A DNA stretch of 64,000 nt from Macrostomum hystrix (taxonomy: Eukaryota > Animalia > Platyhelminthes). The stretch is taken from assembly GCA_950097015.1 (NCBI GenBank), contig CATNEN010000002.1, positions 2,046,001 through 2,110,000 on the forward strand. The letters are read 5' to 3'. Position 1 is the first letter of the stretch. Each line of letters opens with the position of its first letter. Positions 151 to 28,979 of this stretch are shown piece by piece. Under the pieces are notes generated by a model, which saw nothing but the letters and a program-made list of their open reading frames with translations, was not told where the DNA came from and ran no database searches. The position numbers and the translations under genes are program-made.

Positions 151-988
151 GAAATGAAAGTGAAAACTCGGGGTGAGTGTTTATCTAATCTGTCTATTCT
201 TAGTTGCTTGACCTCTGGGCGAAAGTTTTCTCTCGAGTTCTTTTCAGATTTCTAAGTCTTATAAGTATGTTTCGAGACCACAGATGGGTAAACTGGTTTT
301 TAAATAGTGTGCAACACTCAATTATCATAAATGAGATAATCCAATTGCCCCAGGATGAGATAATCACATTATCACAGCATAAGAGAATCTTATTGTTACT
401 GCATTAGATGATCCCATTGTTACTTCATGTAATAATCCCATTATCACAGCATGTGATAATTACATTGTCACAGCCCTTATTGGCTTGTGCCAAGAGTCTA
501 AGTTGGTAAAAGCAGGCATTATCAATCATTTTCTTTGAGGTTACATTGTATTCTTATATAAATTAAAAAAATTAGTTAAATAAGTTTATAAAAAGAGTGT
601 CATAAAATTATAGGAGTCGCAAATATATTCACTAGGAATGAAACAGAAAATATTTTCCCGCATTAAAACATGGGCGTCATATTTTTCATTTAATTAAACG
701 ATGGACGGCCCAGCAGCTATAAGCGAAAGGTGCACACTCGTATTAACTAACTGCTGCCGCCGTGAAAGACCTTATTTGAGTCAAAATTTACGCCTAAAAT
801 GAACTTGGAAGCAATTATAAAGAAATCGGCACTCGAAAAGATCGGAATGTTTGTTGTAAAACAAAGTCAAGTTACTATGTTCTTACGAAGATAGTTCTAC
901 TATGTACTACTGAATAGAAAACAGGTGATATAAAGTCATTTCACTGCAACATATTTCAACCGCAATCAATGAAACTTTAGGAATTGTT

Positions 989-2086
989 TCATTGATTCCT
1001 TCGCCTCAATATGAAATAGGCAAAACCGAGAGCCATCGCCAGCGAGAGCGCAGTCGCTAGCGGAATAATAATATCCGCAATGTCCGGAGCTCGTGTGCTG
1101 GCCACCTCAGTGCAGTTGGTTCCGGTGAAGCCAGATAGACACTTGCAAGCGTAAGTCAGAGTTTCCTGCCGTTCCGGATCGCCGGATATCATGCAGAGGC
1201 CTCCGTTCTGACAGGGCAAAGATCGACAGGGGCTAGTGTTCTGGCAGACTTTTCCGAGAAATCCCGAAGCACAGTAACAATGATAGTTATACAAGCCTAG
1301 CCGGTTGGAACAGGTGCCTCCATTGAGGCAAGGTGGTCCAGTCTGAAGATTTTTGCAGGTGTCCCACTCATATCGACAAGTTCTTCCCTCGTATCCTCGA
1401 GTACAGTTGCACTTCGGATAAAGCAGGTCCCATTGCCGAAAGATGCAGACGCCGCTGTTTAGGCAGGGGCAATCTTGCTGCCGACAGCCGGGTCCAGAGT
1501 CTGGCAAGTCCTTCACTTTGATAGTCTTCAGGAAGTCCGTTTGGTTTAGCAGCTCCGATTTGGTGTGCAACGGCACTTTGACGATCTGGTCCAGACTCGC
1601 ATTGGCAATGCAGCCTCGATAATCATCGCCGATGTGAAAACTCGTACTTCTACCCCATGGAAATCGTCCAGTGAAGTTGCTTGGCAATCGCTCGACAAAC
1701 CGACCGTCCAACACGATCTGCCCACCGCCCTCTGTCTGCATTTTCAGGTGATGCCACTCTCCGTCGTTGATGACTGGTTCCTTCATGTTGATATATATTT
1801 TTGTGGACTCGTTGCTTACCTTCCAACTCAGTTTTACACGAAGCGTCGCATTTGATCCAGAAAAGTCCACCCCGATATACTCATTGTTACCGTTCATTAG
1901 AGTAATCAGAGCATATGGGGATCTGATGGAGGTGCGGAACTCCAGCTCAAATTGCTTCAGAAACGGCTCCGAAGTGTTCGGCGCTCTAATGAGTTTGTAG
2001 GATGCGAGGTTATCTATTGTGAAGGTGGCTACCTCCGCTCGGACTGCCACTGCCGCTAGCACCAGCATCAGAAGTGGAATGGACAT
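989..2086 (-). CDS. Intronless Crumbs-like type I membrane protein A1 (signal peptide, laminin-G, 3 EGF, TM, no cytoplasmic tail), 365 aa
   Basis: Open frame; first ATG at 2086 (the ORF-track start is TTG); signal MSIPLLMLVLAAVAVRA; LamG motifs LEFRT, NDGEWHHL, YRGCIANA; EGF repeats CLNGGTC...C.C..GF.G..C; TM DIIIPLATALSLAMALGFAYFIL followed by RRRNQ*. Confidence 0.85.
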   Translation of the reverse strand: MSIPLLMLVLAAVAVRAEVATFTIDNLASYKLIRAPNTSEPFLKQFELEFRTSIRSPYALITLMNGNNEYIGVDFSGSNATLRVKLSWKVSNESTKIYINMKEPVINDGEWHHLKMQTEGGGQIVLDGRFVERLPSNFTGRFPWGRSTSFHIGDDYRGCIANASLDQIVKVPLHTKSELLNQTDFLKTIKVKDLPDSGPGCRQQDCPCLNSGVCIFRQWDLLYPKCNCTRGYEGRTCRYEWDTCKNLQTGPPCLNGGTCSNRLGLYNYHCYCASGFLGKVCQNTSPCRSLPCQNGGLCMISGDPERQETLTYACKCLSGFTGTNCTEVASTRAPDIADIIIPLATALSLAMALGFAYFILRRRNQ

Positions 2087-4593
2087 GCTGATCTGAAGTT
2101 TGACGTTAATTGGACTAGCCAAGCTGGTCTAAATCTTAGGCAATGTGTTTTTTAGCCGTAGACTTTCAATGCTTGTCCCAGTGCCTGGTCTATCATTCGA
2201 TATTCAAGGTCGGTGATTTTGACGATAAGAGGCAGGCTTTTTAAGTGCGGCTAAGTCTCAGCATTATGTGTGGTCATATCTCCACGTCATTTCAGTAACG
2301 TACAAAAATTCAATATATCTATTGATAAAAAGCCACACATGATTCAAGACTCAGGTCTAAATTTAGTGATATACAGTGATCTTCGCAAAGCCCAGGCGTG
2401 CATAGCTTATCATATTTACTCTTAGAAAAAGAGCTGAAATATTTGGTATGAAATATCGAACAAAGGTCGGAGTGTACTGTGAAATTTGCTTTTAACAGGC
2501 TCTCTGGGCTTTCCAATCAAGAAAAAAATTCTTAAATTAAATTCAAGTAACTATTCAAAGACTTTATAGAAAAATTAGCAGACTGACCTAAAAAGTTAAT
2601 GATCGAAGCCATGCTACTGATCGTATTTCACCAATTTCCCATACTAATTAGTTAACAACTCAGGATTAGAAAATGTAGGCACTTACTCAGGTTACTTTCT
2701 ACTGCTTCAGCTTCTTAATCGGCCGAGTGTTTGTTTCTTGTTCAGGTGTTGCGTAGCCTCTCCTTAGTCGTCTGAGGGTGGTAGAACTGGCCGCTGTCAC
2801 GACTGTGCTCAAACTTAATCTATGGGTTGACCGATGACGAGAGTGAATAAGAATCCTTAACAATGTCTTCGAGCTTGGAATTCGCAATAGAACGTGCACC
2901 CAATTAAAATCGCCTAAAAGTTTGCCTAGTTCCTCAGGAAGGGTGTCTTCTTCGTTATGTCTGAAGCGCAAAGTGTATCTTTATTCAATCAATAAATCCT
3001 GTAAGCTCTGCAACCTGTGCGCAACAGCTCTGTATACAAGGCCTTTCTCAAATGCGTCGACGATATGCGGATCTCGTTAACGACTAAAGCTGGCTATAAA
3101 GAACTCAATTCATTAACACGCAAACCAAATTTATTGTATCAGAAATGAGTCTTGATTCTTCTTCTTTTGAAGTCTTCTTTGAATTCAAGTGGGCCGCTCA
3201 GAGTCTGAACTTTTCACTAAGGACTACTAAACAACACTAGTAGTAGTCCCTGCTTTATAGTCAAATTTTCGCTTGTAGTTTAAGGCATTTTTGGAGGAAA
3301 ACAGGTCCAAGACACATTATTTACTTAGGTCATGAATATTTGCATATTGGGGTCAAGCGTTTTTGCTCAACTGCATTATGGGGAGTTTCAGGTGAATGTT
3401 ACCATTTATGGAAGTGTTGGAAAAACTGCAGTTAAGAACCGTTTTGCCATTATGTAATATTCCTAAGTATCGTAAAGCCATGTCTAAAAATAGCATACGA
3501 GTCCTAAAAAAGATCATCAGTTATTGCTTACATTTACCCGTGACATTACTTTAAGTAGCATGTTGAGCATTCTACTCTCCACACAAGTAAGCAAACACAA
3601 CACAAGCATAGCTTGGATTAAATAAAAAATATTTATCAAAAGGTCAAACGAAGCAAATGCAACAGTAGTGCCACTGGAATGGTGCTATATGAGCGAAGGG
3701 GCGAAGAGAGCTATATGAACTCACACCTTTACTTGTGTGGAAGCAATTCCGGAGTTCTGGAGCGTCAGAAAAGTGTAATTCAACTGGCAACATTCTGAGG
3801 CGCGAGTTGATAACACACTTTGGCACTGAGAATTCGTTTTCCGATAATCAGATACTTATTCCGTGTGTTGTTGGAAAGAGCCTCGAAAGAAAGTTTCGCC
3901 TGCTGTGTCATACCAAGCGGCATGATGGGGGCGTTGGCGAAGTAATTGAGAAGGATGTGTAAGAGCGACCTCCCGCACCAAAGTGCGACATGAGCAATGT
4001 CTGTTAAACCGCGAGAAGACCTGCCAGAGTGCAGCGCCTGAACGATATCAACGAAACGATTCATGCTCCGGAGTCGGAGCATGCATCGCGATCCTTATTA
4101 ACGGTTCTCATGTTCTCCTCAAGATATTGATAAAATTCAAAATTATTGATAAAGTTTAATCTAAGCTGGAAAATGTAAAGTCTTTGTTTTCTTCTGCATC
4201 TGAGTTCGTGGACTACAAGCCGATCCAGCTCACATGGTGTCCTCACACGTAGAAATCTGAGCTACTCTTAGTACTCGTAGCTGCTCCCTTTCTTCATTGA
4301 TAAAGCCTAGTCGCTGACGATCATTTAATAAGACTCGCAAAATATTCTCAGGTATGAACAACTGTTTTTGCCCATAGTCTGAGTACATTTTCACGAGCAA
4401 ATGCGAAGTTTATTCATTGCGGACTAAAAACATGGGTTTAATTATTTTTTTGCGAAAACTCTGAAATGATTGCTCCGAGACGAGACGAGACCACCTGTAG
4501 GGAAATTAGGAGTCGTGGTCATCCACCTGAAGCCGCTTAAGGCGCGAAATAGTTGACGGGGCTTTGTTGTACAGGGCGAATTTATGAAACTTG

Positions 4594-4668
4594 ATTGGTA
4601 TGTGCCACAAGCAAATTGGTATGTGCCACAAGCAAATTGGTATGTGCCACAAGCAAATTGGTATGTGC
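4594..4668. repeat. 21-bp tandem repeat (about 3.5 copies) with four CCAAT boxes upstream of gene B1
   Basis: attggtatgtgccacaagcaa repeated; ATTGG = CCAAT on minus; about 200-280 bp before ATG 4871. Confidence 0.75.
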
Positions 4669-4870
4669 TTAGTATCTTATCTAGAGCAAGGCATTGCAAA
4701 AAATGTGCATGCGCTTACGTGGTGCAGTCAGCCCCGAGGTCCGTACTAATCGAGGCTAAAATATACGCTACCTGAGGACAATCTCTTTAAGTTGGCGCAT
4801 GTTACTCAGGCGCGATCGAAATCTGTCTGCTAAAAGCGACGAAGCTCAAGCTTACAGAAGAATTATTAGT

Positions 4871-6160
4871 ATGCAGCCTCGCCTGTTTATAGCAGTTATC
4901 TTGTTGTTTTCTGGAAGTGTCCACACATCATTATATTTGGCCATTAAAGATTTCGCTATTTCTTCAACACCGGAAAGCGGCACGTTTAATGAATCGAACT
5001 CAGCTCGGTTTCATCTCGCCGGTTCACCGACTGCCAACAAGACTCTGTTGGAACAAATAAAATTGAATTTTCGCACATCTCAAGCAAGCAATTCTTTCCT
5101 GTTCTCAATTGTCAATCAGCGAAACGAAACCTTTACAGTCCAGATTCAATCAGCTGATGAAGTTAAAGTGCGACTAATATATTTGCGAAATCCCGAAGGA
5201 CATAACGTTAGCGAACTGGCTTATGAAGAGCTCATCCGTCCGGCTCCAGGTGTTGCGAACGGCTCCTGGCACCATTTGACAATGACTGCAGAGAGCAATG
5301 GATCGCTAGTATATAACGGTGAAACAATCCAGGATGAGCTGTTGAAAAATTACACTTATTATTTTCCTTGGGACAATAGTACATCGATTGAAATAGCTGG
5401 CACATTCAGGGGCTGCTTTGCCAATGTCAGCCTTGATAACATAATATCGATGCCGCTTTCTTCGAAATCGGATCTGCTGAACATCACGGACTACCTGCGG
5501 CTGGACTCCACATCCAGGCTGCCAGAGGAGGCTGGGTGTCGTCAGGCGCCTTGTCCTTGCAAGCCGAACGGCATGTGCATCTACCGTCAGTGGGACTTGC
5601 TGGAAAGATGCAACTGCACCCGGGGCTACACACCCGAATCGATGTGCAAGAGCGAATGGAACACTTGCGAAAGTTTGGACATGGAACTACGATGCCAGAA
5701 TGGGGGTACCTGCTCCAACAAGCCAGGCGTCGAAAGTTATGAATGCAATTGCACCCAAGATTATCTGGGAACACGATGCCAGAGCTTCAATATTTGCCGA
5801 GCGTGTCAGAGCAACACTGTGAATTGCACTCTTACTGGCGACCTCGAGTGTCCGGAGTCACTCGATTACAACTGCATCTGTGCGTCAGGGTATTCCGGCA
5901 GAAATTGCACCGAGTTTGAGCTACAGCCGGGACTAGATATTACTCTAATAATTAGCGTCACAGTTGGCATCATAATTGCCATCCTTATTATCGCGATTGT
6001 TGCTTTCGTGGTCGCTAAGATCATCAGAGAGAGGCGTCGAGATTCCGGAGCGTATGGGCCAAGCCGACGAGAGGTGCAGGCGGGCAGAGACACAAGCATG
6101 GCAATGAGTCATCCGATGCGACCACCGAAAGACGAACGCATGGAAATATATTGTGAATAA
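4871..6160 (+). CDS. Intronless Crumbs-like type I membrane protein B1 (signal, laminin-G, 3 EGF, TM, Crumbs-like cytoplasmic tail), 429 aa from ATG 4871
   Basis: Open frame (an alternative upstream ATG lies at 4799); signal MQPRLFIAVILLFSG; LNFRT, NGSWHHL, FRGCFANV; three EGF repeats; TM; tail RERRRDSGAYGPSRRE...MRPPKDERMEIYCE resembles the Crumbs GTYSPSxQE...KPPPEERLI tail. Confidence 0.85.
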   Translation: MQPRLFIAVILLFSGSVHTSLYLAIKDFAISSTPESGTFNESNSARFHLAGSPTANKTLLEQIKLNFRTSQASNSFLFSIVNQRNETFTVQIQSADEVKVRLIYLRNPEGHNVSELAYEELIRPAPGVANGSWHHLTMTAESNGSLVYNGETIQDELLKNYTYYFPWDNSTSIEIAGTFRGCFANVSLDNIISMPLSSKSDLLNITDYLRLDSTSRLPEEAGCRQAPCPCKPNGMCIYRQWDLLERCNCTRGYTPESMCKSEWNTCESLDMELRCQNGGTCSNKPGVESYECNCTQDYLGTRCQSFNICRACQSNTVNCTLTGDLECPESLDYNCICASGYSGRNCTEFELQPGLDITLIISVTVGIIIAILIIAIVAFVVAKIIRERRRDSGAYGPSRREVQAGRDTSMAMSHPMRPPKDERMEIYCE

Positions 6161-6190
6161 ATATGTTCAGAACATGTGTAAATAACCGCA

Positions 6191-6540
6191 TAATAATAAT
6201 AATTGCAGGAGGGCTGTGGGCACATCATTTGGTGACACTAGACCCTCAGCCAGCGAGGAGACAATTCTGCCCACTTCGCTGACTCCTGAGCACACACGCA
6301 CACAGATACTGTACGCAGGCACAAGCTCACACAGGTGTGTACATCTGCCCTGACTTTCTCGTCGTCAAGTGTAAATTTCACAATGCCTTGGAGGTTAGCC
6401 CACAAGGGCGTAAATTGTAAGACAAGCCTCCAAGCCTTCTCTCCGCGGCTGCGCCCCAAAAAATGTGGCCTCGCCGCGGAATCGAGCTTCAGGACACAAA
6501 TGCGAGAGGCAAACGCGTTAACCCACTCTGCCTCCACCCC
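6191..6540 (-). mobile_element. tRNA-derived SINE, family 2
   Basis: Minus-strand head GGGGTGGAGGCAGAGTGGGTTAACGCG...GCTCGATTCC (A/B-box like); (TTA)n tail at 6191-6203; homologous pieces at about 27395-27540 and 54190-54410. Confidence 0.7.
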
Positions 6541-9029
6541 ATGTGTAGATAATAGGGACTTCAAAAAATTAGAAACTTTGAACTCTAATTTCCCGTTTTT
6601 CTTGCACTTTTTCGGTTCTAATTTTGCAGGCCTGACTGTTATTACTTTAACAATGCATGGACTTAAAATTCGTTGTATTTTTAACTGTAACAGTCTTCAT
6701 CTCGAATGTATTCATTTATTTATCTATTTTAAAATAACATTTGATGCGAAGTACCCAAAATGAGGCTTTCGTATGATGAATCGATTGTTTACGCAAAATT
6801 TTACTTTTTATCTTTTGATTTTTTTCTAAGATAACACTAATAATAATAATATATTATAGTGGAATAAGCCTAATCGAATGAAAACGTCGATAGTTTCTCT
6901 GACGTGAAGCGTGGTCGATGGAGCTCGTAATTTTTACAATACGCCAATGTTCAGCCAAGGTTCGCGCTTTAAACTGATTCAGAATATTTCGTTTTTTCGA
7001 GTTTTACGTTTTCGTGCATTTTTCGTTTCGTCGGATTTCGTAGAAAATTCCACGAGCGGTGTTTGACCAATTTTTGACTAAGGAAATCAGACCTACTTTC
7101 CTGACATAAACAAGAGCTACGAAAAAGACGAGCGAAAGGAGAGCCAGTTCAACTGATCAATTCAAAAGTCAATTTTCTGGTAGCGGTATAAAACTTTCGT
7201 AAAGTACGTTTCAGTTAAAATATTTCTCGGTTCCCACAACAATCAGACGTCGGCTCAAAGGCTCAAAGGCACAAATAGATTATTACATTCAAGGGAATGA
7301 TTTTCAGTTCACATAAATGTAAATTTTTAGGCAATCAAGCTAATGTTTCTAAACTTATTTATAAATAGTTTCACTATTTTACTTGCGCACTAGTTGCCAG
7401 TTTACCGAATAAAATTTCTAGGAGGCCTCGATCGAGGCCAGCCTGGGAGGTTGAAACATGCGACTCGATAACTCATCCGTTTGATCTATCCGTTCTATCC
7501 CTCAAAACGTCCACCTCCGCTTCCCATTGTTCTGGTTCGCTCGAGCGAGACGAAAGCTTATTCTAAAAATGTCCTTTAAAATTTTCGCAAATCCTTGCCT
7601 TGGTACTTTTGCCAAATGTAACTTGAATTTATTTATCTTCTCGTTGTAACCTTAAAGATGTGTGTTTTAATAAATAATTATTGTAATTATTTAGCAAAAG
7701 CATAATTAATGAGCCTATTACGTTACTATTATCTAATACAAGCTACCTCACCCACCCCCAAGCATACTGTGCCGCGTCGTGCGAATCAGAACGTGGCAGT
7801 GCTCGGTTGTGCACTTTGGATGGTCAAGGCTGGGTCAACGGAGACTTTCCATCACGGTTCACGCGCGTGATGCGTGTTTTCTACCCTACACAATCCCATC
7901 GCTTTTCCTACAAAGAAGACACCCTCGGGTCATGCCTGACCGATACCTGACCTGCAGTACAGCTGCGACTTGATTGAGCCAGACTCAGGGTATTTGCTCT
8001 TACTTTAGACCACATTGGGCTAATATAATTATTGCCAGTTTTTAGTCACTGCTCAGGGTTGTCAAATAGCTAAATCCAATTCTTTTGTCTGTTTCCCCTG
8101 CTCACTTAAGCAGGCAGGCTGGTGAGTAAAGAGTCATTGCGATCCAAGAGGAGTTTACTGGCAGGCTAAATAAAAAAATAGATTAAGCAATAATGAAACT
8201 CTAATATCACTACTAACAGCAGTACAGTTTGCACACAGCCGCATTCTTGAGAGGTTAGGCTTTCACCAACGAAACGCGGCACAGACCTTGTAAGAAGGGA
8301 TCGAGCCTCTATAATTAAACTTTAGCAAGTTCCTCACCCCAAGCTGAGGTAGGATTGGGTAATCTAAAAAATAACCCCCCTATGCGAAAGACCTTGCTTC
8401 CAGCACTGACCAGGACAGCCAGAAAATGCCCAACATAGAGTCCCTCTAGCGGCCATTATTCTCTTTCTTTCTGGCCTCAATATTAGCCTCGTTAGGTTTT
8501 AGTTATGGAGTGTGGTTGCAGAACTACTCTAAGTAGTCCCTACCCTAATACTCCCTTGCCTAGAATTAGAGTAGGCAATGGACCTTCGCCAATCGGACCA
8601 CAAACAAGCTACCAATCATCACTAGGGCGGGTGACACTGGGGAGAGTAAGGCCAGATCCCCTCCCACTTTAGGATCAGCACTGCAGTGGGATTTCCAGCC
8701 TTCGCATCGAGCCATCCACGGGTTTGATTAAATTAATTAACGATTGATTAGCAAGTAATTTAGACGCGAGAAAAGCATAGCCAAGTCAAAAAACTAATGT
8801 CTGAATTACCTGAAAAGTGATAAAGAGGCTTTATTATCTTCGCCGTTAGTTTTTACTCTGGAACTTTTTCTCCACTAAAGCACCGTGTGAAAACAGAGAA
8901 AACAGAAATTCAGGTAGATAATGCGTTTGATAAGACACGGACAAACTTAAAGATATAAAATGAAATGTGCAGACACCCTAATTACATTATCGCTTGTCTG
9001 AACAGTTCACATCAAATTTCTGCCAGAGA

Positions 9030-9261: not shown

Positions 9262-9734
9262 GCAAAAAATTCTATTGTAAGAAAACAAACTTAGAATGGA
9301 ATTTCATACAGAAAAATGCATTTCTAACGTTAAAAGAATTTTATTTACCTGATGTTTTTCCCTCAGGAGACTTTTACAATTTTTTCTAAACGCATATGTT
9401 CTTATAACTAAGTATTCTAAATTATTGAAAACAAGCTTAGACTTACAATTCAATCTAAAAATATTAAACAAAGGCATTCCAGGATGCTGTAATCGTGATT
9501 GACTGAAGTGCAGCGACTTTTATATTGAACTTCTCAAAAATTACTTTGTTTTACTGCTGTCGCTAAAATGCCGTTTTTAGGCAGTTTAAATCATTTTAAG
9601 CTATTTTAAGTTCGATTCCATTTAAGAACTAGTCTTGTAGTTCTACTATGTACTACTGAACAGAAAACAGGTGATATAAAGTCATTTCACTGCAACATAT
9701 TTCAACCGCAATCAATGAAACTTTAAGAATTGTT

Positions 9735-10844
9735 TCATTGATTCTTTCGCCTGAATATGAAATAGGCAAAACCGAGAGCCATCGCCAGACCGCACAGCGA
9801 GAGCACAGTCGCTAGCGGAACAATAATATGCGCAATGTCCTGAGCTGGTGCTCGTGTGCTGGCCACCTCAGTGCAGTTGGTTCCGGTGAAGCCAGATAGA
9901 CACTCGCAAGCGTAAGTCAGAGTTTCCTGCCGTTCCGGATCGCCAGATATCATGCAGAGGCCTCCGTTCTGACAGGGCAAAGATCGACAGGGGCTAGTGT
10001 TCTGGCAGACTTTTCCGAGAAATCCCGAAGCACAGTAACAATGATAGTTATACAAGCCTAGCCGGTTGGAACAGGTGCCTCCATTAAGGCAAGGTGGCCC
10101 AGTCTGAAGATTTTTGCAGGTGTCCCACTCATATTGACAAGTGCTTCCCTCGTATCCTCGAGTACAGTTGCACCGATCAAGCAGGTCCCATTGCCGAAAG
10201 ATGCAGACGCCGCTGTTTAGGCAGGGGCAATCTTGCTGCCGACACCCGGGTCCAGAGTCTGGCAAGTCCTTCACTTTGATAGTCTTCAGGAAGTCCGTTT
10301 GGTTTAGCAGCTCCGATTTGGTGTACAACGGCACTTTGACGATCTGGTCCAGACTCGCATTGGCAATGCAGCCTCGATAATCATCGCCGATGTGAAAACT
10401 CGTATTTCTACCCCATGGAAATCGTCCAGTGAAGTTGCTTGGCAATTGCTCGACAAACCGACCGTCCAACACGATCTGCCCACCGCCCTCTGTCTGCATT
10501 TTCAGGTGATGCCACTCTCCGTCGTTGATGACTGGTTCGTTCATGAAGATTTTTGTTAGCGTGGACTTATTGTTTACATTCCAAGTCAGAATAATACGAA
10601 GCGTCGCATTTGCTTTAGAAAAGTCGATGACGATATCTTCGTTGTTATCATTTTCCAAAAAAATCAGAAAATATGGGCTTCTAGAAGAGGTTCGGAACTC
10701 CAGCTCAAATTGCTTCAAAAACGGCTCCGAAGTGTTCGGCGCTCTAATGAGTTTGTAGGATGCGAAGTTATCTCTTTTGAAGGTGGCTACCTCCGCTCGG
10801 ACTGCCACTGCCGCTAGCACCAGCATCAGAAGTGGAATGGACAT
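9735..10844 (-). CDS. Intronless Crumbs-like membrane protein A2 (paralog of A1, tail-less), 369 aa
   Basis: Open frame, same architecture as 989..2086; ends RRKNQ*. Confidence 0.85.
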   Translation of the reverse strand: MSIPLLMLVLAAVAVRAEVATFKRDNFASYKLIRAPNTSEPFLKQFELEFRTSSRSPYFLIFLENDNNEDIVIDFSKANATLRIILTWNVNNKSTLTKIFMNEPVINDGEWHHLKMQTEGGGQIVLDGRFVEQLPSNFTGRFPWGRNTSFHIGDDYRGCIANASLDQIVKVPLYTKSELLNQTDFLKTIKVKDLPDSGPGCRQQDCPCLNSGVCIFRQWDLLDRCNCTRGYEGSTCQYEWDTCKNLQTGPPCLNGGTCSNRLGLYNYHCYCASGFLGKVCQNTSPCRSLPCQNGGLCMISGDPERQETLTYACECLSGFTGTNCTEVASTRAPAQDIAHIIVPLATVLSLCGLAMALGFAYFIFRRKNQ

Positions 10845-11409
10845 GCTGATCTGAAGTTTGACGTTAATTGGACTAGCCAAGCTGGTCTAAATCTTAGGCA
10901 ATGTGTTTTTTAGCCGTAGACTTTCAATGCTTGTCCCAGTGCCTGGTCTATCATTCGATATTCAAGGTCGGTGATTTTGACGATAAGAGGCAGGCTTTTT
11001 AAGGGCGGCTCAGCATTATGTGTGGTCGTATCTCTAAGTTATTTCGGTAATGTACAAAAATTCAATATATCTATTGATAAAAAGGTACACATGACTCAAG
11101 ACTCGGGTCTAAATTTAGTGATATACAGTGATCTTCGCAAAGCCCAGGCGTGCATAGCTTATCATATTTACTCTTAGAAAGAGAGCTGAAATATTTGGTA
11201 TGAAATATCAAACAAAGGACGGATTGTACTGTGAAATTTGCTTTTAACAGGCTCTCTGGACTTTCCGATCAAGAAAACAATTTCTTAAATAAAATTCAAG
11301 CAAGCATTCAAAGACTTTATTGAAAAATTAGCAGACTGACCTAAGAATTGATAATCGAAGCCATGCTACTGATCGTATTTCACCAATTTCAGATACCACT
11401 TAGTTAACA

Positions 11410-14169
11410 TATTTTATGTTATTATATTTAGACTTATTAGTGACTTATTGTATTTGCACTCCGGTGCAAGTATATGCCGCGACCTCCCGCCCAGTGGTGA
11501 AGTCGGCGAGCCGCGCTTAACTGCTGCGGCGGCCAACAGCGGCAGGACCAAGCGGGGGCAGCGCAGCGCCCGGCGGCGAGAGCGCCGTTGAGCGGTTGAA
11601 CGCCGTCGTGAGCGCAATCGGCGAGGTCGACAGCGTGGCGCTGCTCGCCGAGCCGCAACTCTCCGCGGTCCAATGGATCTTCCGGGTGGCGCCGGGGACC
11701 AACTGACTCAGCAACACCGAGAATCAGCCATACCACAGGGCACGCTCAGGGTCGGGACGCTGAACTGCCGCACCCTCAAAGCCACCTGGCGGAGAGGACT
11801 GCTGGCGAAGCTAGCGCACGACCTGAGCTGCGTTGTCATCGCGCTGCAAGAGGTGTCCATCAGGGCGGAACCAGGGCTCCACTGCGAAGACCTGGGTGCC
11901 GGATGGACTCTCCACTACTCATCAGCGGACCACCGCAGTCGTGGAGGAGTCGGCGCGCTGATCGGACCGAGGCTGCAGAAGAGCTGTCGCTGCGTCTCCC
12001 TGTCCCCTCGGCTACTTCGGGTGGACGTCCGGCTTGGCGGCCGGAACGCTCGCCTTTTCTGCGGTTAAGCGCCCCCTGCCACTCGGCCCGATGAGGCTCA
12101 AGATTTCTTCGAGCAACTCTCGGTGCAGTTGGAGGCGATGGCGCAGCGAGACACAGTGGTTGTCCTCGGAGACCTGAACGCAGTTCCGCGTAGGTCCGAG
12201 CGATCGATGTTTGTTCCGCCCCGCGAGAACGGCAATACCGAAGCGCTGGAGGACTTCCTGGAGAGGCAGGACATGGTGTCGGCCAACACCCGCTTCCGCA
12301 AGCCATCTGGCAGGCTCGTGACCTTCGTGGGCTGCAAACGGAGGCGGCGGAACGCGCGCGGCCGGTACGAAACACGGAGGCTGGCACAGCTCGACCACGT
12401 GCTTGTGCGCTTCCGGGAGCGCCGCCGCGCCATCAACTGCCGCACCATCACGCCGCTGGCTCTGCTGTCCGAAGATCGGCTACTCATCTGCGACCTGCGA
12501 GTGCGAGATCCGCTCTACCGTCTGCCGAAGCGGCCACCGCGGCGCTACTACCGCTCAGGAACGCCGACACGCACCGCCGCTTTGCTAGCCATCGTTAACG
12601 CGCCGCCCCCCCCGCTGCCAGGCAACCTGACGCTGCCACCAGAGACGCCGTTGCCGGCAGAGGAAAGCTTTAGCATAGCACCCGTCAGCACAGACGACGT
12701 TGTGACGCTCGCCCAGAAGACTCCGGGCGGCAAGGCGCTGGGTCCAGACGAGGTGCCCATCGAGGCGCTGCGCATTCACTGTGTGGCCAGTAAGTCGCCA
12801 GTGCGATGAACCGCGTGCTCTTCGGTGTGGCGGCGCCCAACGAATGGACCACGGCGCACATCGTCGCTATTCCTAAGAAGCCGGGCACCACAAGGCTAGA
12901 GGAGCACCGAGGGATCTGCCTTCAGTCCTGCGCTGCGAAGCTGTTCAACCGGATGCTGCTATCGCGGTTGCAGCTCGTGCTGGACCCGTATCTGCGACCC
13001 GAGCAGAACGGCTTCCGGCTTCACCGCGACACAGTGACGCAGATCCTAGCTCTTCGCCATGTCATCGAGGAGGCGCGAACTCGCCAGTTGTCCTCGCCCT
13101 GGTGCTTCGAGCGTACAAAGTGCCAGAGCAGCTGGTGTCCGCCATCATGGCTTTGTACTGCCACACAACTGCTGCTTTGTCAACTCAGGACGGCCTATCG
13201 GACTTCTTCGAGACATCCTCCGGGGTGCTCCAGGGGGATACGCTGGCGCCGTTCTTGTTCATCCTAGTGCTTGACTGTGTGCTGCGAACTGCTCTTCCGA
13301 CTGACAACGATGGCCTTCTGCTGCGGCGACGCGTGGGTCGACGTCAACCAGAGAAACGGCTCAGTGTGCTTGGCTACGCCGACGATCTCGCCCTGCTGTG
13401 CTCGACCGTCGAGGGCGCTCAGCGCCAGCTGGACAGGCTGGTCGGCGCTGCGGCGAGCATAGGCCTGGTGGTCAACACGCAGAAGACCGTAGTGCTCTGC
13501 GTGCCCGGCGACATCGAGGCTGCAATTTACTGCCGAGGCGCTGACGGGCAGGCAACTGAGCTCCCAAGATACCAGCAGTTCGTCTACCTCGGCGCTCTGG
13601 TACCAGACGCTCGTGACGATTTGCGGCGTCGCCGCGGGCTTGCTTGGGCGGCCTTCCGTTCCGTGAGGATCGTTCTGCAGTCCGAGGCCCTACCTGACCG
13701 TCAGAGGGCGGCGTTGTTCCGGGCGGTGATCGAGACCGTCCTCTTGTAGCGCCGAGACCTGGACGCTGACGGACTCGCTTGAACATCAGGTCGACGCGGC
13801 GCACGCTGGCCTGCTGCGCGCTGCCTTTAAGATCGACGACCAGCGAGTCTCCAATGCGGCACTCTACCGCCGCACCGGCCTGGCCCTGCCAAGCGAACTT
13901 CTGCGCCATCGGCGACTCCAGCTTGCAGGCCATGTCATCCGCGCTGAGTCGAACTGCCCAGAGCCGGTGCAGGAAGTCCTGCTGCTCACGGTACAAGCAC
14001 CCTACCGGCGAGGACAGGCGCAACCGGCGCTACGTCGACTGCCTGCTGGATGATGCCGGCGCTCCGGACTCTGCCGGTGGCGCGGCCTTCGTTCGCGCCC
14101 AGGCCCTCAAGCGCGCCCTGTGACGCTGTACTAGACTCTGACAGCGTACTATGTTGTTATGTTGTTGTT
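11410..14169 (+). mobile_element. RTE-clade non-LTR retrotransposon, decayed (APE endonuclease + reverse transcriptase)
   Basis: EN motifs GTLNCRTL, ALQEV, VLGDLNA, LDHVLV; RT motifs EQNGFR, QGDTLAPFLF, YADD; several stops and frameshifts; (GTT)n tail; 7-bp TSD GTTAACA at 11403-11409 and 14170-14176; empty site at about 2650 in copy 1. Confidence 0.9.
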
Positions 14170-14644
14170 GTTAACAACTCAGGATTAGAAAATATAGACA
14201 CTTACTCTGAAGCACAAGGCGAATCTTAATTCAATCAACAAATCATCTACTGCTCTGTAACCTGTATGCTATGGCTCTGTATAGCTCTGTTTACAAGGCC
14301 TTTCTCAAATGCGTCGACGATATGGGGATCTCGTTCAGCTGCATTTTGGGGAGTTTCAGGTGAACCTTAACATATACGGAAGTGTTGGAAAAACTGCAGT
14401 TAAGAACCGTTTTGCCATTGTGTAATTTTCCCAAGTACCATAAAGCCATGTCTAAAAATAGCATATGAGTCTTAAAAAAGATTAGCAGTTATTGCTTACA
14501 TTTACCCGTGACATTACTTTAAGTAGCACGTTGAGCATTCTACAACTAAGCAAACACAAGTATAACTTCAATTAAATAAAATATAATTATCGAAAGGTCA
14601 AACGAAGCAAATGCAACAATAGTGCCACTGGAATGGTGCTATAT

Positions 14645-17600
14645 TATTATTATTATTATTATTAAAACGCGCACGCCATCTATCGGTGCTGATTTTTTTT
14701 AATATATATTTTTTAACAACACATTTAAATGAACAACGAAAAGCAACATAAAAAGCGAAGTTTAGTAGGAATCAAATATCGAGCTGGGAAGGGAAAGCAA
14801 AGGTATTAAAAATAAGAGCAGTAAAAACACAAGGGACGCCAGGGATAAAACAAATTATGAAATATCTATTGTTGAATGCTAGTAAAATCTCGTAGTCTCA
14901 GGGCAGCTGTTCCCTTATTTTAGATATTTCTATGATGTATTTTGCTAAAGCTTCAGCGGTTTCCCTATCGTCTTGAGCCATTATGTAGTTAGATTTTTCT
15001 TCTGCTGTTAAGGATATGAAATTGGGGGTTTTCCCAGAAACTTCCGTCTCAAATTTCGAACGTGCTGCGCTATACTTATTCCAAGTGCACTTAAAAAGGA
15101 AGTGGACCTCGTTTTCAACTTCTGTTTTGCACTTACTACATAATCTATTTACATACGGAATTATCGGTCTCGCAGTTCGCAATGTTTCGCAAGCTAGCTT
15201 ATGGTTTCCTAGTCTAAACGAGGCTATGGTACGTCTCAACTCCGGGTTGTATATTTGTTGTAAATATTTTTCGGCTGAATAATATTGCTTGAAGGAGTAA
15301 TAGAAGTGACTTAGCTTGCTTGAGTTCTGTGTCCTTTGTCTCCAATGGGTATCGAACTGAGAAACGAAATTTTTCCTGTGGTTTTGGAATAGTCGCGGGT
15401 TTGCAATCCGATGATCTGTCCTCGTGGAGGAAAGGAGTGTGGGGATGGCGATAGAGTCAGAAGTCGTACCGCAAAGTCCCGCGAGTTGCCGCGGAAAGAG
15501 GGATGAAGGGAGAGATGAAGGGAGAGACAGTGGATGCAGGGAGTGGTCCTCTCGGCCTCAGGCTGGCCAGTCCCACTCAACCCATAGGCCACAGGCATGA
15601 CTGCCGTGCCTACCCCAAGCAGTGCTCGAAACCGGCTAAAAGTCTAAATAGATGTCGGACTACCCGCAAACGGATAGGACAGGGCTATGCAGCCTACTGT
15701 CATCAGTAGCATGTTCGTAACTGACCCCCAAACTCGGTAGCAGTGGTCGACTCGGCCTAGGCTCTTGTCTTAGAAATGTGGAAAGGCTATCGGCAAGCGG
15801 AAAATGATCTAGGGTAGCGCCACCACCCAATGCGCCTACGTTGCCACCGCAGACATTTGGGAACTTGGGTCCCCGGAGCTCGCGGCTCCTAGTTTGTCAC
15901 ACAGATCTTAGACAAGCCGAAAAAATAGAGCCTTCTGTAACTTCCGTTTTAGACTAGGGTGAAGACCCCAGAATGGATCGAGACACGCCTCACCAGGGGA
16001 TTCCTGAAATTGCGCTACAGTGGTCTAGAAAGGTGGTACTCAGAACCTGAAAGAGAAACCCATAGCCAGAATCCTACTCATGGAACATCAGACACATTCT
16101 GTACATTAGACTGCAGCCTACACATTAGATAACTAGCAATCCGAGTCTGTGTGAGTTGAGGAAAACAGAGGCAGGGGAGATTAAGCTGAACACTGGCTGA
16201 GTGATTATGCGAGCGTAAGATTAAAAGATCATCACCCCCCACTCCCTTGGCGGTGGAAGCGAGAGGGGGGGAACGGAAGGGAAACTCAATTGGCAGAGGA
16301 GCTTGACACGCACTCCCAGTTCCGCCAGGAAACGAGGAAAACCCGCCAAGGAATTCCCCACCCCTGGGCAGAAAGACAACACGTGCTACACCCCGCATTT
16401 TACTTGCAAATCCCTAGCTCCATATTGCTCTCATACGCGCTTACAATTTCCTTCCTGCCGCAGCTTTCAGCTCGGCTGTGCCAGAGCCCATTCCCCTAAT
16501 AGATTAGCCACTCATGGTAGAGGGCTGTCTAAGGTTAAAATAAAGGTGAAAAGGAGACATAATAAGAGAAGTTAAGTTGTTATAAAGTTAAGCCCAATAA
16601 GTTAAAAGTGCTTAGATTGGATAGTTTATTAGGCGAAAAAGTTCCTAGCTTCCCTCCCACTAAATGCCGCCTAACTAATAGAAAGCCCCTTAGGAGCAAT
16701 AATTGCAAACCGCTGCGCGGATTACTTATCTGGACGCTTCGGCCGCGTGCTGCAATCCCGTTGTTCTCGGGGAAGGGGACGGGGTAAGACAGTAAAAGCC
16801 GGGAAGGGAAAGATGCTGCGAGTCGGCAGGGGGCCAACACGCTTGGAGCTCAAGGCTCAATTTAACAGCTCACCTAAAGAGGTGGCTCGCGCTCAGGGGG
16901 AACGGGGACAGGCAATGGGCCTGCACTAACTGTGGAGCTATGAGCTCTAGGGTCTATGCCCTAACTGGGTCTGGGGGATAAGTCCTGGGTCCGGTGGGAG
17001 TCCGGCCCGGCAAAAGTAAGTCCGGCAGGGGAGAAGGGGAAGAGCCGGTGGGAGAAAAGAGGTCCTAGAGGGAGCAGCGCCGCGCGCTTGCTTAAATAGG
17101 CCTTGCAGCACGCCAACCCCGACATCCATCAAAGCAACCCACATTCGCGCCCGCCTGTCAACGGGGAATCGAAGCGACGACAGGCCGCCCCAATTGCCCA
17201 ATGGACCGGCGGCGGGAAACGACAGGTGCTCATCGAGAGCAGCCATCGGCAGACGGCCAACAATTGTTACTCCGCCGGGACAATGGAAGCGCAGGCGCCG
17301 ACCTGCCTACAGTGATATTTACATGTATCTAAAGGAAGGAGGTCATAAAGTCGAGCTGGGCTCGAATACTGTAAAGAAGCGGGGACATGAAGAATTTTAT
17401 GATCACTCATAACGCGTGAGTGAGCCCCTATATCTGATCGCGGTTTGGAGGGGAATTATGACCTAAACTAGTTCATACAGTAACATTATGGCCGCGATCA
17501 GTCATTCCTACGGGGAGTCTAGACAACTCCGGAGAGAGAGGATTCGACAGCTACTTGATTCACCGCCGCCTCAAACCCGGCCCTAAGATTAATGATCTTG

Positions 17601-18800: not shown

Positions 18801-19002
18801 TTAGTATCTTATCTAGAGCAAGGCATTGCAAAAAATGTGCATGCGCTTACGTGGTGCAGTCAGCCCCGAGGTCCGTACTAATCGAGGCTAAAATATACGC
18901 TACCTGAGGACAATCTCTTTAAGTTGGCGCATGTTACTCAGGCGCGATCGAAATCTGTCAGCTAAAAGCGACGAAGCTCAAGCTTACAGAAGAATTATTA
19001 GT

Positions 19003-19360
19003 ATGCAGCCTCGCCTGTTTATAGCAGTTATCTTGTTGTTTTCTGGAAGTGTCCACACATCATTATATTTGGCCATTAAAGATTTCGATATTTCTTCAAC
19101 ACCGGAAAGCGGCACGTTTAATGAATCGAACTCAGCTCGGTTTCATCTTGCCGGTTCACCGACTGCCAACAAGACTCTGTTGGAACAAATAAATTTGAAT
19201 TTTCGCACATCTCAAGCAAGCAATTCTTTCCTGTTCTCAATTGTCAATCAGCGAAACGAAACCTTTACAGTCCAGATTCAATCAGCTGATGAAGTTAAAG
19301 TGCGACTAATATATTTGCGAAATCCCGAAGGACATAACGTTAGCGAACTGGCTTATGAAG
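19003..19360 (+). pseudogene. Truncated duplicate of gene B1 (B2; first 119 codons only)
   Basis: Near-identical to 4871..5228 (2 aa changes); homology ends at 'tatgaag' 19360, and the frame then stops at 19422 with no EGF or TM segment. Confidence 0.8.
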
Positions 19361-19494
19361 TTGCAAGCAACGTGCATATAGTGCGACTGCATGTTTGTTG
19401 GTATTTCACTAAGGAACACTAAACACTATACGGACGAATGTTAACTATTATACTTTTTTGGTATATAAAATAAAAACTAATACTAATAGCTAGA

Positions 19495-20471: not shown

Positions 20472-28979
<8,508 letters not shown>

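Follow-up and report, generated by a model that had tools for sequence, protein, structure and literature searches.

A short, old tract in one copy of a young Crumbs-like LamG-EGF gene pair of Macrostomum hystrix, probably brought in by gene conversion

Hypervariable regions within homogenised tandem receptor genes are known from the peptide-binding exons of the MHC, the LRR surfaces of plant R genes and the VERL repeats of abalone, and in these systems dN lies above dS and many variants exist. Here we analyzed a gene of the flatworm Macrostomum hystrix, called A1, which resembles them in having a small variable segment (the patch) in otherwise near-identical paralogs, with changes on exposed strand positions. 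It differs from them in that dN/dS of the patch is about 1 and in that the large variant repertoire of a recognition receptor of the allorecognition, immune or gamete type was not found, the one assembled genome having four A-type genes with two patch types plus that of A4. Short-tract interlocus (ectopic) gene conversion is the second system for comparison. The locus shares with it a sharply delimited tract some 150 nt long, a joint rise in silent and replacement divergence, disagreement between tract and flanks in phylogenetic depth, and copies on one chromosome; the differences are that the donor is missing from the assembly and that conversion usually makes copies alike, whereas here two copies are less alike.

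On the protein side, the encoded domain has in its model the same 14-strand sandwich as the LNS domains of neurexin, laminin and agrin (Foldseek E 1e-8 to 1e-7, target TM about 0.6), with profile matches to LNS4 of neurexin-1alpha and to the LG domains of laminin alpha2, but identity is only 13–20%. By alignment the patch would hold the loop that corresponds to the Ca2+-ligand Asp of LNS2 and LNS4, together with the SS3 hairpin of LNS4. Neurexins vary their surface by alternative splicing in one gene, whereas here the variation is between paralogs. Crumbs proteins (Crb/CRB1-3) also have a LamG and EGF ectodomain with a single TM helix, and two members of the present family (B3 and L009) have a Crumbs tail, but A1, A2 and A3 are without this tail, carry a single LamG and three EGF domains where Crumbs has a long array, and are intronless. 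A literature search for this gene family in Macrostomum found nothing. In a word-index search of public protein sets, whole A1 gave EGF-based matches only, and its LamG region and 113-aa N-terminal piece gave no matches.

The window is the whole stretch of 64,000 nucleotides that was analyzed (GCA_950097015.1, contig CATNEN010000002.1, positions 2,046,001 to 2,110,000), and positions below are those of the window. A1 (989–2086, minus strand, stop codon at 989–991) is an intronless CDS of 365 aa, which encodes in order a signal peptide, a LamG/LNS domain, three EGF-like domains, a TM helix and a cytosolic tail of five residues; the parts were assigned from ORF calls, Pfam EGF and Laminin_G_2, an AF2 model, Foldseek and a PDB profile. 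The tandem paralog A2 (9735–10844, minus strand, intronless, 369 aa) has the same signal peptide, single LamG/LNS domain, three EGF-like domains, TM helix and five-residue tail, with a patch of the A2/A3 type. The duplicated block that contains A1 (892–2657) is 93% identical to 9638–11409 and also colinear with the A3-B3 unit, which lies inverted at C2:1.10 Mb. Head-to-head with A1 lies B1 (4799–6160, plus strand, 453 aa), a LamG-EGF-TM gene having a Crumbs-type tail without the final ERLI.

The second unit (A2-B2) is split, in part by a retroelement reverse-transcriptase fragment between A2 and B2 (12806–13749, plus strand, PF00078, with 64% G+C at 12–14 kb). B2 (18931–19422, plus strand) is a truncated copy of B1, with homology up to 19360 and a frame stop at codon 164; residues 1–143 are common to both, and the near-identity of B1 and B2 that had been predicted was confirmed by 2 differences in these 143 aligned residues. 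The duplication ends (19360) inside the LamG domain, and B2 is probably a pseudogene. Further to the right, about twenty minisatellite arrays (24000–64000; periods of 14–48 nt, up to 73 copies each, strong strand skews) occupy most of the right-hand 40 kb, and an ORF at 25746–26261 matches mid-Hsp70 (PF00012, E 1.7e-17, profile positions 366–491), and represents a fragment or else a single exon of a gene. In the whole assembly (220,453,370 bases, 42 contigs) the family has nine members, namely A1–A5, B1, B3, L008 and L009. A3 lies 950 kb from A1 and is 87% identical to it, A4 is 71% and A5 48% identical to A1, and L008 and L009 are more distant. The A genes are each paired head-to-head with a tailed B gene.

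The ectodomain of A1, with LamG and EGF domains in a type I membrane protein (helix at 337–364), is of the Crumbs kind. The tails of A1, A2 and A3 (RRRNQ, RRKNQ and RQRNQ) contain neither the FERM-binding G-x-Y nor the C-terminal ERLI PDZ ligand of the Crumbs tail. The tails of B3 and L009 have G-x-Y-x-P-S with C-terminal ERLI and align with the Crumbs tail, which is also the only PDB match of the B3 tail (4WSI/4YL8, E 0.12). Judged from their sequence, the A genes are intronless genes for tail-less Crumbs-like proteins. At the 3′ end of B1 (6101–6160), comparison with B3 (L007) shows that ERLI was lost by an 18-nt deletion which leaves the terminus DERMEIYCE, and B1 may no longer bind PDZ partners.

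The AF2 model (mean pLDDT of 10-residue blocks about 72–89 over residues 19–192) predicts a two-sheet jelly-roll sandwich of about 180 residues, that is, the LamG/LNS fold of the Concanavalin-like Pfam clan. The best Foldseek matches of the model are neurexin 1beta, agrin LG3, perlecan LG3 and laminin alpha2 LG5, and the family profile matches neurexin-1alpha (E 4.7e-16) and laminin alpha2 (E 1e-7) in the PDB. With Pfam Laminin_G_2 (PF02210), A1 scores 22.9 bits, exactly at the cut-off of 22.9, and A2 only 17.8 bits; comparison with the ESM Atlas gave LamG-like character only.

The divergent tract of A1 occupies 1781–1934 on the minus strand (codons 51–102), and its counterpart in A2, taken from the A1-A2 alignment, lies at 10539–10692 on the same strand. 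In the tract 46 of 154 bases differ between A1 and A2, with no indels, against 54 of 1602 ungapped nt elsewhere in the duplicated block (Fisher p 5e-25), and across 5000 shuffles the highest count in any 154-nt window was 23 as compared with the 46 observed. The A1-A2 difference in the patch is real and far beyond chance. The original prediction had counted 21 different residues among 49 at ORF residues 66–114 (54–102 from the Met), a number which the translations and the nucleotide alignment reproduce, and the 120 residues after the patch have 3 differences, as it had said. All of its quoted codon pairs (GCT/TTT at codon 59, ATG/GAA at 64, GGA/AAA at 77 and TAT/AAA at 98) and its i,i+2 series (62/64/66 and 85/87/89/91/93) were found again. 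The tract starts at codon 51 (1934), three codons before that patch and with two silent changes. A1-specific differences run over 1789–1934 and end at codon 100 (1789), while the final two differences of the tract (1788 and 1781) are A2-specific. The substitution spectrum of the patch is mixed, with 22 transitions, 24 transversions and every type present. A directional mutation process was also considered as its source and was dropped, since these changes have no single-base bias.

Silent sites have diverged in the tract together with replacement sites. With NG86 the A1-A2 dS of the patch is 0.51, against 0.047 elsewhere, and with ML 0.39 against 0.039; across methods it is 0.38–0.51 inside against 0.035–0.047 outside, an excess in the tract of 8- to 14-fold depending on the method. 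Synonymous changes had been predicted in the patch, and a model-free count gives them at 9 of 31 identical-residue codons in the tract against 7 of 296 outside (p 1.4e-6). Replacement sites in the patch have diverged to the same degree as silent sites. Depending again on the method, the patch dN/dS is 0.69–1.1 for A1-A2 and 0.76–1.6 for A1-A3, it is not different from 1 (p 0.28), and an excess over 1, the mark of a recognition receptor under diversifying selection, was not established for the patch in either pair.

These values bear on one of the two causes proposed originally, according to which A1 and A2, once duplicated, diverged at a recognition surface through diversifying selection on point mutations. 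Many of the changes are radical and multi-base, and 17 of the 21 fall at polar, exposed-like positions, as such selection would have it. It can also draw on the pair A2-A3, in which patch residues 54–102 have 7 replacement and 0 silent changes and replacements are 2.7 times as dense as in the remainder of the gene (p 0.035). Compared with that remainder, however, the 7:0 ratio lacks significance (p 0.15), and the A2-A3 pattern hints only weakly at relaxed or positive selection acting on this segment. Fast adaptive evolution of the protein is rejected for A1 versus A2, because a roughly tenfold rise in silent divergence cannot come from selection acting on the protein, and dS is raised in the very tract where dN/dS stays near 1. 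Furthermore, about 4–5 substitutions would be expected in 154 nt at the 3% background, and 46 are seen. As the sole cause of the difference between A1 and A2 we regard selection on point mutations as already refuted, and the chance left to it is very slight.

The age of the tract is different from that of the DNA around it. In the tract the p-distances are 0.30 for A1-A2, 0.32 for A1-A4 and 0.34 for A2-A4, which is nearly a three-way split, whereas outside the tract they are 0.029 for A1-A2 and 0.19–0.20 to A4. In the tract tree the A1 branch has a length of 0.19 and the A2/A3 stem 0.21, against 0.01–0.02 outside the tract, and in this tree of 150 nt the three resolutions are not separable (AU p 0.26–0.81). 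The depth of A1 versus A2/A3 in the tract is comparable to the A4 split. When A4 is used as polariser at the 21 variable sites, A1 agrees with A4 at 7, A2 agrees with A4 at 5 and neither agrees at 9. Both patch types have derived residues, which fits an old split rather than a burst confined to one copy.

The DNA around the tract is young. Over at least 6.6 kb (890–7486) the A1-B1 unit (unit I) is colinear with the inverted A3-B3 unit (unit II), with a uniform divergence of 2–3% in coding sequence as well as in 2.7 kb of intergenic DNA, and only three islands rise above this level, namely the A1 patch (29%), the A3 3′ end (24%) and a 50-nt filler near 3650. Since the whole A1-B1 unit is a recent duplicate at 2–3% divergence, the patch is an old island in young DNA. 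The A3 3′ end is a second old island in this gene family: when A3 (L003:1501-2610) is compared with 890–1099, the TM, tail and 3′ UTR are about 24% diverged from A1/A2 and the rest about 3%, and the motif AIVLSLC is common to the TM of A3 and to A4. The filler belongs to an intergenic insertion hot spot (3640–3690, 14640–14700 and 17830), where unit II has 50 nt of short repeats and, at the same TATAT site, 3.2 kb has been inserted in the A2 unit. The island at 3600–3750 was considered as a further conversion tract and rejected, being a filler/indel at this hot spot.

Along the A gene the odd copy shifts: upstream it is A2 (30 of 40 informative sites), within the patch it is A1 (42 of 49), and at the 3′ end it is A3 (39 of 55). 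On the nucleotide alignment, A1, A2 and A3 thus form a recombinant mosaic with three groupings over 1.8 kb. In the tract (codons 51–100) A2 and A3 differ at 6 of 150 bases. They have a common patch type with 4% divergence, close to background, so that one change on the A1 branch is sufficient.

We consider it probable that one short ectopic gene-conversion tract was pasted into A1 from a divergent A-like donor. According to this history, A1, A2 and A3 would be young copies (about 3% diverged) of one A-B head-to-head gene-pair unit, and an ectopic conversion, or an equivalent double exchange, would have overwritten 146–154 nt of A1 (codons 51–100/102), a length that is ordinary for conversion tracts in animals. 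The donor would be a divergent A-like gene or allele whose separation from the A2/A3 type is about as old as that of A4. The mosaic, its depth and its sharp edges are direct observations. By parsimony over the mosaic tree A1 would be the recipient, and the swap would be a single event.

Segmental gene conversion was the other cause proposed originally, and it is borne out by the raised dS of the tract, the excess of silent changes, the depth at the level of A4 and the three groupings of A1, A2 and A3. As in a gene-conversion mosaic, the tract is bounded, and its silent-site divergence and phylogenetic depth are unlike those of its flanks. The pool of paralogs that was supposed to supply the donors did not hold up, as in this assembly only A1–A4 have an alignable patch. 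For an A1-type donor, the DNA search of the 220-Mb assembly matched only A1, A2 and A3 and the 52-aa peptide search matched only A1–A4, and no donor could be identified there. Such a donor may have been lost or left out of the assembly, may have gone with the purged haplotigs, or may segregate in the population.

The outcome of these donor searches is also what would be expected if A1 were an old paralog, of which all but the patch was later homogenised with A2 and A3 by concerted evolution, as that history requires no donor. The patch would then have been spared, either by selection that maintains two specificities or by a block to heteroduplex formation at 30% mismatch. The three copies have evidently recombined, with A2, A1 and A3 odd in turn, and the patch is the least conserved segment of the ectodomain in every family comparison except B1-B3 (A2-A4 identity, for example, is 49% in the patch segment and 72–77% elsewhere); both facts suit homogenisation around an old patch. 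Two independent events, one ending at each edge of the patch, would however be required; since all of the unit is 2–3% diverged, one of these must have extended over at least 5.5 kb, through non-coding DNA and B1. Conversion tracts of several kb are unusual in animals. We rate this history below a single conversion tract into A1 and hold it to be unlikely.

An error of assembly or polishing must also be weighed, in which the flanks were homogenised by mis-mapped reads (Arrow/Pilon) or the patch is a chimeric join. The M. hystrix assembly was built by canu, passed through Purge Haplotigs and polished several times with Arrow and Pilon (PMC10468722), and near-identical paralogs are where such polishing tools err. 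On the other side, the sequenced line SR1 is highly inbred (F about 0.998; PMC10468722), and the tract is unique in the genome, in frame and of equal length, with the core residues and both sequons kept. Outside the patch, A1 retains private differences and three in-frame indels, and the low divergence spans 6.6 kb of unique context. An artefact is accordingly very improbable, only marginally less so than selection on point mutations.

In the AF2 model the tract encodes the strands 58–64, 70–76, 81–90 and 93–105 with their loops. The conversion proposed above would thereby have exchanged four strands in succession, with three loops, in the LamG/LNS sandwich, leaving the hydrophobic core, both N-glycan sequons and the length intact and changing 21 mostly polar positions. 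The core residues L60, I61, L63, I71, F75, L82 and L86 are the same in A1 and A2, positions 73 and 84 have only V/I exchanges, and the sequons N79 and N92 are both kept. Among the 21 changes, 17 are at positions which are polar in the other paralogs, and a burial proxy for the variable sites, hydrophobicity in other paralogs, gives an odds ratio of 2.0 (p 0.35). The claim that one beta-sheet face is a diversified recognition surface stands in part: the alternating strand pattern is real, but it does not by itself show a recognition face, because any old divergence of a beta-sandwich gives the same pattern.

An acidic cluster adjoining E69 (E64, D66 and D70), which is carried or conserved in A2, A3 and A4, is gone in A1, where the three residues are M, G and Y. 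Relative to A2, lysines found only in A1 stand at 85, 89, 96 and 102, on the 81–105 hairpin. By alignment E69 would correspond to the D of the SAD motif in neurexin LNS2 and LNS4, and Asp-329 of LNS2 is Ca2+-coordinating (PMC4183798). The SS3 splice insert of LNS4 aligns with the hairpin turn at 88–94, and the tract appears to overlap the classic LNS binding region. A difference in ligand specificity between A1 and A2 is plausible, since the tract includes the loop aligned with the canonical Ca2+ ligand.

We also put forward, as a quite unlikely reading ranking below the old-paralog history, an ancient dimorphism of the specificity-determining surface (the Ca2+-site loop and the 81–105 hairpin) in flatworm-restricted, tail-less Crumbs-like receptors, in which selection keeps the types apart and the cassette moves between young copies. 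If this dimorphism were true, it would mean two receptor specificities for a selfing, hypodermically inseminating worm, e.g. in cell-cell or sperm-tissue recognition. The event itself is an instance of a well-known kind, otherwise ordinary, in an uncharacterised flatworm gene family. It gives the caution that a hypervariable patch between near-identical paralogs need not be adaptive hypermutation; silent-site divergence and the age of adjacent non-coding DNA tell a pasted-in old segment from fast protein evolution. For the biology of this Crumbs-like family, residues 51–102 are the natural segment to swap in binding experiments, because they are the fastest-changing part of the ectodomain (except in B1-B3) and, by alignment, would overlap the LNS binding rim.
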